Source: Hyaloraphidium curvatum SAG 235-1
Lineage: Eukaryota > Fungi > Monoblepharomycota
Assembly: GCA_025558095.1 (NCBI GenBank)
Contig: JAIVFI010000002.1
Coordinates: 1 to 64,000, forward strand
Direction: 5' to 3'
DNA: 64,000 bases
The stretch's first letter is position 1; each line of letters begins with the position of its first letter. This document shows positions 28,077-32,495 of this stretch, piece after piece. Position numbers and translations under genes: made by a program. The notes under the pieces were generated by a model. That model was not told the DNA's origin and did no database searches. It saw only the letters and a list, made by a program, of their open reading frames with translations.

Positions 28077-28372
28077 GGCGGGGGCGGGCCGGGGCCGGGG
28101 CTCAAAAGCGCTCTAGCGGAACAAGATTGGACTGGCGAGGCCGGTCTCTCCCTGCCGGCAATGACGGGCCGATGGCGTTTGCTCGTGGGCGGAGAGATGG
28201 CGCGATTCCCAGCACAAACACCGCTGCGACTTCTTCCGTCTCCCACGCGCCGCCCTGAAAATCGCCCTAGCTCCTCCGAAGACGATCAACGAACAAGATT
28301 GATTCCTGGTCGGCACAGCAACCTGTCCAATCTTCTCCCCAGCGTACGGGCTTCCTCGCTATACGGCTCACT

Positions 28373-29266
28373 TCAGAGCCGCCCCTCGTCCCCGGCCGGG
28401 TTCCTCCGGACGTGCTCCACCAGCTCCTTGTTGACCACCTCGGGCGCCTCGTCCGTCACAAAGTGCCCGACCCCGGCCAGCGGCACGAACCTGTACGCCG
28501 CGGCCACGTGCGCCCCCGTCCCGTGCGCCGCGGTCTTGCCCACCGTCCCGTCCTCCTCGCCCCACAGGTACAGCGTCGGCACCTCGATTATGCCGACCTC
28601 GGTGCCCTTGAGCGCAGCCCCGGCGGCGCGGTACCACCCCAGCGCGGCCTCCATCGCCGCTTCGTTCCCGACAACGGAGAGGTACTCGTCGATCGTCTCC
28701 GCGGGCACCCCCTTGCTCTTGCTGGCCCACTTGGGTCCCAGCAGCTCCCTGATCCTCGCACACCCGTCCTTCACGAGTTCCGGCCCCGCCTCGGGCTTCA
28801 GGAAGGCGGCGTGGTGGCCCGACCGCGTGCGCTGGCCCTCGGCGTCGGCCTGGAACGCGGCGCGGAAGGACAGCGGGTGCGGGCGCGAGAGCACCGTCAG
28901 GGAGGCGAGCCGCGACGGGTGCAGCGAGGCCGCGTGCCACGCGATGGCGCCGCCCCAGTCGATGCCGACGAGGTGGAACCGCCGGCCGGGGGACACGGCG
29001 TCGGCGACGGCGAACACGTCGGCGACCATCTTGTCGACCGTGTAGTTCATGATGTCGGCCGGGTCGGGACGCAGCCCCGGAGAATAGCCGCGCTGGTCGA
29101 CGGCGACGGCGCGGAAACCGGCCGAGGCGAGCGCGGGCAGCTGGCGCTTGAACGCGTGCCGCGACTGCGGGAAGCCGTGCAGCAGGACCACGAGCTCGCC
29201 CGATGCGGGGCCGGCGGCAAACGCCGTCAGCGTGCCGCCGGGAATCGGGATGCCGATGGTTTCCAT
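28373..29266 (-). CDS. Epoxide hydrolase-like alpha/beta hydrolase, intronless
   Basis: LLHGFP, DQRGYS, GIDWGG (Asp nucleophile), [19 protein letters not shown]; ends GRL. Confidence 0.9.
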
Positions 29267-29419
29267 GGTTGGGGGGCAGACGGGTCCGGTCTGGTCTGGG
29301 AGGCAGTCCGGCGCGATGGAAAAGAGCCAATCGACGAGCGCGCTAGGCCATGTAAGCTCCGAACTCCAACGATTTCTGGCTTTCTCAGCTCCTGGTGGTT
29401 CGATTTGGCTTTGGTGGTG

Positions 29420-30318
29420 TCACCTAGCCCCGCATCCCCGACGACGACGAGCGAACGACTACGTCGCCGCCGGCCCCGCCACCTTCCCGCGCAGAACCGC
29501 TTGTGCTTCGGCCAATCCCCCCTCTGGCACTCCTCCCCGCAGTAGTACGCAGCCCTGCATGCCCCGCACCTCCTCAACCCCCCCGTCGCCGGGTCCGCCA
29601 CGGTGCCGCAGGCCTGGCAGTACTGCACCAGCATCCCCACGGGCGCCTCCTCCCCCACGTCCCGCTTGCCTGTTCCGATCATGGCGAGGATCACCCTCTG
29701 CGTGCCCGTCTCGTTGTTCACGTCCCCCACGTACCCCAGGTAGCCCTCGCCGACCTTGGCGAACGCGATTGGGGCCTCCCCCTTGTCCGTCACCGGCATA
29801 ACCGGGAACACGCGCGATTCGGTGACGGCCCCCTCGGCGGGCACGTACACGCGCTGGTCGGCCTCGGCCCCGTCTACGTGCAGCGCCTTCATCGAGTACC
29901 GTTCCGGCAGCCCCGGCATGCGGTCGGCAAAGGCGGGGTTGGCCCGGTGCGTGGTCCGCTACGTCCGCGCCGGGGGCGTCGCGATCCTGTGCTGTATGTT
30001 CTCCTCCATGGTGAGGATGGACGCGCTGTCCTCCCTCTTCGGGCGCACCTTCGGGCTGCCGTGGACCAACGGGGATTACATGCTGCCCAGCGCCACGGCG
30101 ACCTTGGAGTTGGCCTTCACCGCAATGCCGCCGTCGGTCACGAGGACGGCGGCAAAGGCGTTGGGCCCCGTGAGCTTTGCGATGGCCGTCGCGGGGGAGG
30201 TCACCTCCACCGGGGAATACGACGCCCGGAGGAGCTGGAGGAAGCCGGCGTACATCGAGTCGAAGAAGCCCTCCTTCTCGAGGCTGATCAGCAGCACGGC
30301 TGGCTTCGATGCGGCCAT
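29420..30318 (-). pseudogene. MYND-finger protein gene interrupted by an internal 122-bp inversion (29960-30081)
   Basis: As written, the minus-strand frame stops (AGC ATG TAA) just inside the inverted block, and the missing 40 codons read on the + strand. Re-inversion gives one ORF ending in CQAC...CGAC..YYCGEECQRGDWPKHKRFC. Probable terminal intron 29424-29482. Confidence 0.8.
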
Positions 30319-30500
30319 CCCGGTGCGTGCTTCGTCCGACGCGGCTTGGTTGTTTTTTTGCCTAGTTGGGTCAGCGTTGTTTGCGTCCTTAGAGGCCCAT
30401 CTACCGGAATTCCTGACTCTGATTGGTCGCGCCCCCTCGCCGCGCCCCGCAGTCACATTCCCCCTCCTGCGCCTCTCCGCCCCGGGGACCCGCGGCCGCC

Positions 30501-32495
30501 ATGCAGCCGTTCTACTACCTCCTCTTCGGCGCGCTGGCGGCGGTGTGCGTGTACCTCGAGGTGCAGAAGTCGCGCGGCGAGACGTCGGCCGTCACCTCCG
30601 AGGCGTACCGCACGTTCCGCAACAACTACGTCGTCGTCTACGCGCTCATGATGGGTGGGTAACCCCCGAGGGGCGGGGGCGCGGGACGGCGGGCGGGGGG
30701 CGGCGCCACGCGGGCAGCAGGGACGCGCGGCGCAGCGGTTGGGGGGTAACCGCCGAGGCTTGCGCGTCCGGGCGGCCGTTGTCACTGCTCGGTAGTGTGG
30801 TGCGAACGTGCCTGCAGCCGGGGAGGCCTATTTTGGGCCCTCCCGTGCGGCCCACAACAACGCGCCTGGATGCTCGTAACGGTTGGGGCCGCACGGCCCG
30901 GGCCCCGGACGGCATGCAAAGCCGGATCTCATGTTGCGGATCTGTCTCGGGCCCACCAGTTGGCCCGCTGCCGGAATGCGCTGCCATGACGGCCTCTGAC
31001 CACGCTTCCGCCACCCTTGCAGCCGGCGACTGGCTCCAGGGCCCGTACGTCTACGCGCTCTACCAGCACTACGGCTACACCACCGGCGACATCGGCAAGC
31101 TCTTCATCGCCGGCTTCGGCAGCTCGATGGTGTTTGGCACCATCGTCGGCAGTCTCGGCGACCGCTTGTGGGATCCTTCTCCTGTCCTTGCCGAGACCAA
31201 ACTGATCATGTTCCCTCCATCCCCACCTTCCAGCGGCCGCCGCACCGCCTCGATCACCTACTGCGTCACCTACATCCTCTCCTGCTTCACCAAGCACTCC
31301 CCCGCCTACTCGGTCCTCATGGTCGGCCGCCTCCTCGGCGGCATCGCCACCTCGCTGCTCTTCTCGGCCTTCGAATCCTGGCTCGTCGCCGAGCACTTCA
31401 AGCGCGGCTTCGACGCGCAGTGGCTCTCGCTCACCTTCTCGCGCGCCATCTTCGTCGGAAACGGGCTCGTGGCCATCCTCGCGGGGCTGCTGGCCAACTT
31501 CCTCGTCAAGAACATGGAGCTCGGGCCCGTGGTGCCGTTCGACGCCGCCGCGGCGTTTTTGTCGGTCGGGTTCGCCATCATCGTGACCACGTGGCCCGAG
31601 AACTACGGGGACGCGAGCGAGAAGGCCGCCTTCTCGGCGCAGTTCGTCAAGGTGGGGCGACAGGCGCCGGTGGTGAACTCGCGAGAGCTGAACGCATTAC
31701 CATACGCGGTCCACAGGCCTGGCAGACGATCAAGGGCGACCAGCGCATCGCCTCGCTCGGCGCCATCCAGTCGCTCTTCGAGGGCTCCATGTACACCTTC
31801 GTCTTCCTGTGGACCCCCGCCCTCAGCCCCAAGGGCGAGTCCATCCCGCACGGCTTCATCTTTGCCCTCTTCATGCTCGCCTGCATGATCGGCTCCTCGG
31901 TCGCTGCGCGGCTTCTGCTCAAGATCGAGGACGTGCCCGTGGAGTCCTACATGCGCTACGTCTTCGGCTGCGCCTCGCTTTCCCTCTTCGTCCCCGTCGC
32001 GCTGCGCTTCATGGGCATGAACGACGTGGCCGACCCCGCGGGCGGGCTCACCCTGGCCGGGCAGATCCTCCTCCTCGCCTTCCTCTGCTTCGAGGGCTGC
32101 GTGGGCGTCTTCTGGCCGTCGATCATGAAGATGCGCTCCACCTACATCCCAGAGGAGTCGAGGTCGACCATCATGAACTTCTTCCGCATCCCCCTGAACC
32201 TCTTCGTCTGCGTGGTCCTGTACAACGTCTCGGCATTCGAGATCTCGACCATGTTCACCATGTGCGCCGCCTTCCTGGGCGTCGCGGCGGCGCTGCAGCA
32301 CAGGCTGCTGGGGCTGAGCAAGAACCCGCAGCCGCGGAGGTCGATCGCAGGTAACGCTCCCCCGCGGCGCGCGGGGGCCAAGATGTCCTGACGGCCGTTT
32401 GGCGCGCAGACGACTCCGAGGCGTCGCAGAAGCTCACCGACACGGACGAGCTGGGGAGGCCCAAGGAGGAGAAGGAGGCGGGCGAGTCGGCGTGA
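30501..32495 (+). CDS. MFSD5 / molybdate-anion transporter (MOT2)-like MFS protein (multi-exon)
   Basis: FRNNYVVVYALMM-AGDWLQGPYVYALY, GRLLGGIATSLLFSAFESW, QSLFEGSMYTFVFLWTP, MNFFRIPLN. A probable last intron (GTAACG...CGCAG, about 32351-32409) moves the stop from 32391 to 32495. Confidence 0.92.

Follow-up and report, generated by a model that had tools for sequence, protein, structure and literature searches.

The stretch analysed here (hereafter the window) comprises 64,000 nucleotides of the genome of Hyaloraphidium curvatum SAG 235-1, positions 1 to 64,000 of contig JAIVFI010000002.1. Direct reading and translation of its minus strand identify a gene that opens with an ATG at 30318, runs for 79 codons to ...KVAVALGS and then meets ATG TAA (30081-30076). 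The minus-strand frame picks up again at 29958 as RTTHRANP...YSMKAL...GYVGDVNNE and continues into a MYND zinc finger. Between these two parts, the plus strand (29960-30079) reads YVRAGGVAILCCMFSS...GLPWTNGDY (YVRAGG...WTNGDY) over 40 codons, followed by AT. The features of the locus, in window coordinates, are the following:

30082..30318, minus strand: piece A, codons 1-79 (MAASKP...KVAVALGS), from translation; aligns to the N-termini of the homologs
29960..30081, plus strand: piece B, the inverted 122-bp block, with 40 codons found on the plus strand only and 2 nt of the junction codon (translation, blastp and genome search)
29470..29958, minus strand: piece C, RTTHRANP...YSMKAL...GYVGDVNNE... 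through the MYND finger (translation and homolog matches)
29491..29619, minus strand: MYND zinc finger (Pfam PF01753, E 1e-11, residues 114-156 of a 243-aa piece, from which these coordinates were computed)
30076..30078, minus strand: in-frame TAA made by the inversion, after which the present product stops at 80 residues (reading and genome search)
29959..29961, minus strand: in-frame TAG, a second stop, at junction 2 (reading and genome search)
30082..30083, no strand: GC dinucleotide of junction 1, with the breakpoint possible on either side (outward ambiguity 2 bp, inward 0)
29958..29959, no strand: GC dinucleotide of junction 2 (junction analysis)
28080..30349, no strand: RNA-derived contig of 2270 nt (run X1, record 4), unspliced and colinear with 0 differences, covering the whole broken gene and the downstream hydrolase gene

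The zinc finger scores 45.1 bits over the full PF01753 profile (positions 1-39), for which the cut-off is 22.7. Beyond the finger, the minus-strand frame stays free of stops down to 29227 (29227-29470), which adds ∼85 low-complexity residues and overlaps the start codon of the downstream gene (29266). The MYND-bearing homologs that we read (P0002 and a locus, L009, described below) terminate at most ∼10 residues past the finger.

The downstream gene encodes an alpha/beta hydrolase (28373-29266, minus strand); it is intronless and transcribed. In a database of 5.8 billion proteins, its nearest relatives are of bacterial type, share at most 60% identity with it and carry the description 'pimeloyl-ACP methyl ester carboxylesterase', the named matches belonging to Methylomirabilota and Proteobacteria. 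To judge from its sequence, this gene of a fungal genome may derive from bacteria. On the other side, the broken gene and a plus-strand neighbour (30473-32405) diverge from a gap of ∼120 bp (30349-30473). An RNA contig places four introns in this neighbour, at 30654-31021, 31168-31233, 31650-31714 and 32346-32404, all of them GT..AG.

Two other accounts of the 122-bp block were rejected. An intron that would excise it has a sole GT..AG pair to use (30079..29959); the excision would remove 121 nt and shift the frame into a stop, and the RNA contig is unspliced at this place. The block is also covered by a plus-strand ORF of 710 aa, and this ORF is a by-product of the 67% G+C content and not part of a plus-strand gene.

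Homologs, domain and copy number

Searching a database with the C-terminal piece as query yielded 25 relatives, mostly from lichen-forming ascomycetes and a truffle relative. The pieces were searched and aligned separately, rather than as a joined (restored) protein. When each of them was compared by blastp with eight homologs, they took adjoining homolog coordinates in every case. In P0001, piece A matches up to residue 28, piece B matches residues 29-68 and piece C matches from residue 70; in P0005, piece A matches up to residue 97 and piece B covers 98-136. Piece B was found exactly between A and C, with E values from 1e-5 to 4e-19, whereas the minus-strand reading of the block had no match to the eight homologs. 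The initial annotation expected a single colinear arrangement in the family, and the three pieces do lie in one line in all eight homologs.

An alignment with 23 homologs extends this result. Pieces A, B and C tile the family with the absence of one column, which corresponds to the split junction codon AT|G. For instance, P0001 carries the block in line as ...KAAVALGS-YARSGGIVVFAMMFSNSIRMDALSALFAKTFGLPWTNGHY-F-RTTHAVNPAF.... Nearly all the homologs read or aligned hold the block segment in one line, and P0002 is without most of it. The family pattern quoted in the initial annotation (YVxxGGxxV...FSS...GLPW..GDYxRT...YSxKA) is borne out by the homolog sequences. In addition, tblastn gave the same minus/plus/minus pattern at the locus, and a six-frame search of the whole genome with P0007 returned a minus-strand match containing one TAA and one TAG, together with a separate plus-strand match at 29933-30085. 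The minus/plus/minus readings and the tiling of the homologs agree that reversing 29960-30081 gives a single A-B-C frame with no base gained or lost, as was first proposed. This confirms that a 122-bp piece in the middle of the gene is inverted onto the opposite strand.

Among the homologs, the one closest to the broken gene (53-62% identity) lies at L009:4857-5742, on a Logan contig of SRR26194948. Its frame is shifted after ...VVVTDG (near L009 5035), and its MYND finger contains an in-frame TAG (L009 5653-5655). By its reading, this locus looks like a pseudogene too. The neighbours of the L009 homolog differ from those of the H. curvatum locus, and when JGI metagenome contigs were scanned with the two flanks separated by a gap of 122 nt, no relatives appeared in either orientation.

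A confident model of the N-terminal domain of the family (pLDDT 84.9, pTM 0.85) was compared with solved structures by Foldseek, which gave a probability of 1.00 and TM scores of 0.5-0.6 to the ThuA-like proteins 1t0b and 4jqs, to the middle domains of GH42 and to OST48/Wbp1. At the fold level, the domain is thus ThuA/GATase1-like (class I glutamine-amidotransferase-like). Since the Cys pair within the block is not conserved across the family alignment, we do not infer any enzyme activity from it. In the model, the block spans the central strand (E66-70) and a helix (H79-90) of the domain, so that the flip is predicted to be destructive.

The N-terminal domain is single-copy: a six-frame search of the 31.9-Mb assembly found no second locus, paralogue or haplotig that carries it, and the idea of an intact copy elsewhere in the assembly was therefore abandoned. 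At least 149 MYND matches are present in the genome. As the closest homolog locus also looks broken and MYND matches are so numerous, it is plausible that a gene of this type was lost.

Orientation of the block in RNA and DNA contigs

Three public runs contain the stretch, all of them as contigs, a form in which rare variants drop out. The 2270-nt RNA-derived contig of run X1 crosses both junctions in the inverted form and without gaps. Record 5 of the same run lacks all four GT..AG introns of the plus-strand neighbour, and the depth within the 368-nt intron of that gene is zero, which makes carry-over of genomic DNA in X1 negligible. In X2, which comes from a second sample and study, a contig of 174 nt on 29812-29985 crosses the junction 29959|29960 and reaches 26 nt inside the block, short of the 31 nt required by the bridging rule. 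A single orientation was thus observed at the contig level, in RNA and in the second sample. The restored mRNA for which the initial annotation proposed a search did not appear in the RNA-derived contigs, and neither the restored orientation nor a strand-changing joint occurs in the contigs of the three runs, from which a rare variant would be lost. At the contig level, both DNA and RNA of the sequenced strain carry the inverted form, and the broken gene is still transcribed, as seen in an RNA contig that is blind to strand.

Two orientations of comparable abundance should break the assembly graph at the junctions; consequently, the inverted form makes up at least a large majority. This bears on the proposal that the inversion is one allele of a functional gene, of which a second haplotype, other nuclei or other isolates retain an intact allele. 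Diploidy is regarded as common among zoosporic fungi, which speaks for a second allele, as does the loss of minor variants from contigs. However, an intact copy would escape nonsense-mediated decay, and its RNA level should equal or exceed that of the broken one. Moreover, one contig runs through both junctions where two comparable forms would have broken it, and a second locus or haplotig is absent from the assembly. We therefore regard a functional second allele as improbable.

Junctions and origin of the inversion

The position of the breakpoints has an ambiguity of exactly 2 bp, namely the GC at 29958-29959 and the GC at 30082-30083, and given this ambiguity the inverted segment of 122 bp could range from 118 to 126 bp. 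No flanking inverted repeat was found at the junctions, so that the self-complementary GC is, as originally described, the sole junction homology. Among random 122-bp inversions placed in the window, 19% have an ambiguity of at least 2 bp. When compared with each other, the two sites match at 4/12 to 15/40 positions (P 0.15-0.7 against random GC-centred pairs). The similarity of the two breakpoint sites is at chance level and gives no evidence of recombination sites.

We favour the view, with a probability of roughly 0.8, that the locus carries a recent, conservative and pseudogenising micro-inversion that is still transcribed and that arose either from the rejoining of two breaks or from a replication template switch. 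A single mutational event would have reversed the 122-bp segment inside the only copy of the gene, with no base gained or lost. The flip brings TAA and TAG in frame and takes the central strand and the helix out of the N-terminal domain, which leaves a transcribed pseudogene with a product of at most an 80-residue fragment. Such a one-off micro-inversion, one of the possibilities raised by the initial annotation, fits everything seen: the segment is reversed in place, the 2-bp ambiguity lies within chance expectation and the pieces tile exactly.

Two routes may be considered. In the first, two nearby double-strand breaks would release a piece that is rejoined in reverse by end joining. In the second, replication would switch template to the opposite strand and back. 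Junction homology of 0-2 bp is compatible with either route. End joining often leaves small indels. A base-perfect result is not expected of a template switch without flanking inverted repeats. Exact conservation of bases is strongly predicted by neither route, and this is a caveat on the explanation that we prefer.

Micro-inversions are known as one-off mutations, produced by end joining or by replication-based mechanisms, in animal comparative genomics and in disease genes. The present case resembles them in that a small segment is reversed in place and disrupts a gene, with 0-2 bp of junction homology and repeat-free flanks. Unlike them, it is perfectly conservative, is confined to the coding part of a gene in a zoosporic fungus and is also seen at the RNA level. 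Our limited literature search found no described fungal micro-inversion of this size. In yeast, intragenic template-switch inversions flip spacers of 2-5 bp between inverted-repeat arms of >9 bp (Abraham & Hazkani-Covo 2021, PMC8604942). The yeast events are likewise intragenic, in place, reversible in principle and fungal, and they need no recombinase. However, the H. curvatum junctions offer 'arms' of 2 bp around a spacer of ∼118 bp, and the arms of ∼9 bp or more that define a quasi-palindrome template switch are lacking at the locus. With the unitary pseudogenes of expanded fungal MYND families, the broken gene shares a single disabling lesion, a large family with fast turnover and continued transcription; it differs from the usual ones in that its lesion is an inversion, and not a point mutation or an indel, and in that its N-terminal domain is single-copy.

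Regarding the age of the event, the initial annotation took the lack of other stops to mean that it is very recent. This part of the argument is weak, because long spurious open frames are common at 67% G+C, and one of them (the 710-aa ORF) covers the block itself. The conservation of the family residues fares better. In our reading of the 23-homolog alignment, 22/22 nearly invariant family positions are kept across the three pieces, which argues against long decay and for a young event, within an age bound that is loose since the homologs are 35-62% identical.

Serine recombinases, a possible reversible inversion and significance

The initial annotation also stated that no recombinase is nearby. 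This holds for the window, in which profile searches found no Resolvase domain (PF00239, serine recombinase), and on the contig the nearest recombinase gene lies at a distance of ∼610 kb, its sequence divided over two frames. Nevertheless, the genome does hold transposon-borne serine recombinase genes, with nine Resolvase matches, all in repeats; tyrosine recombinases (PF00589) had no match in the genome. The Resolvase matches sit in multi-copy elements that are 93-99.9% identical to each other. Their ORFs, of ∼200 aa, keep the catalytic Ser (YVRKS) and the DRLGR/DRLSR motifs, and their best solved relative is the Gin invertase. Resolvase-domain ORFs at loci L012-L018 have the following coordinates:

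C9:339269-339697
C22:421710-422132
C4:373085-373513
C34:542991-543419
C46:168839-169267
C9:539598-540026
C9:338229-338570
C2:639991-640415

One family of recombinase elements is 6.3 kb long and has four full copies with 97-100% identity; a comparison of the copies of this element revealed indels only. The other family has a 2.3-kb unit, which occurs once as a head-to-head palindrome.

Serine recombinases make cuts that are staggered by 2 nt at a central dinucleotide (the 2-bp core), and they rejoin the ends without loss. It is conceivable, but in our estimate quite improbable, that the inversion is one case of a genome-wide process producing precise, base-conserving small inversions in this chytrid-grade fungus, maybe by a serine recombinase at a 2-bp core, and that some of these events are reversible gene switches. 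We observed partial reverse-transcriptase matches lying close together on opposite strands, e.g. at C11:697568-699190, where positions 3-155 are on the plus strand and positions 146-205 on the minus strand, ∼0.8 kb apart. Such pairs are candidates for more small inversions in repeats.

A narrower proposal is that a transposon-encoded serine recombinase cut and rejoined the DNA off target, the self-complementary GC at both sites permitting rejoining in the inverted sense. The exactly conservative inversion and the self-complementary 2-bp overlap at both junctions would be accounted for, and near-identical (97-99.9%) multi-copy elements carry Resolvase ORFs with the YVRKS serine and DRLGR/DRLSR. 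However, a 2-bp overlap arises by chance in 19% of cases and the two sites show no half-site similarity to each other, while the activity of these recombinases is putative. Apart from the GC overlap, no observation speaks for an off-target event, and we give this proposal a slim chance.

The initial annotation further suggested an intragenic ON/OFF inversion switch. In that case the block would be programmed and reversible, an analogue of bacterial intragenic invertons, and the sequenced culture would have been mostly OFF. Bacterial intragenic invertons are bounded by inverted repeats, rely on an invertase and occur in both orientations within one clonal sample (Chanin et al., bioRxiv 10.1101/2023.03.11.532203). 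The H. curvatum inversion is, like these, wholly intragenic, creates a premature stop and is found in its inverted form in RNA. In contrast to them, it is without inverted repeats, its two orientations are not both seen in contigs and its host is a eukaryote. The perfectly conservative flip of an otherwise undecayed gene would suit a switch, as would the presence in the genome of serine recombinases with catalytic motifs and Gin DNA invertase as best solved relative. Against it, one orientation alone is found in RNA and DNA contigs, the sites resemble each other no more than random GC-centred pairs do, the window contains no recombinase gene, tyrosine recombinase matches are missing from the genome and the serine recombinase genes lie within transposon-like repeats. 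A rare restored minority is compatible with the contig data; a reversible switch is nonetheless unsupported, and we hold it to be very improbable.

Finally, mis-assembly of a block that is colinear in the real genome, a reservation of the initial annotation, is hardly credible: the evidence consists of contigs rather than of the genomic reads behind the assembly, but an independent RNA-derived contig of 2270 nt runs through both junctions with 0 differences, a second-sample contig runs through one of them and the colinear form occurs in no contig.

The pseudogenising micro-inversion at this locus provides a clean, RNA-confirmed case of a base-perfect 122-bp inversion that lies within coding DNA of a eukaryote and has no repeats to account for it; taken alone, the mutation is of modest importance. 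Loci of this kind will escape gene callers and homology pipelines or be mis-modelled by them, here as two truncated ORFs. If more precise small inversions in this genome prove to be real and to share a common junction signature, they would suggest that an early-diverging fungus possesses an unusual activity of repair or of a recombinase. A process of this sort, if true, would make it possible to test whether eukaryotic microbes control genes by DNA inversion.
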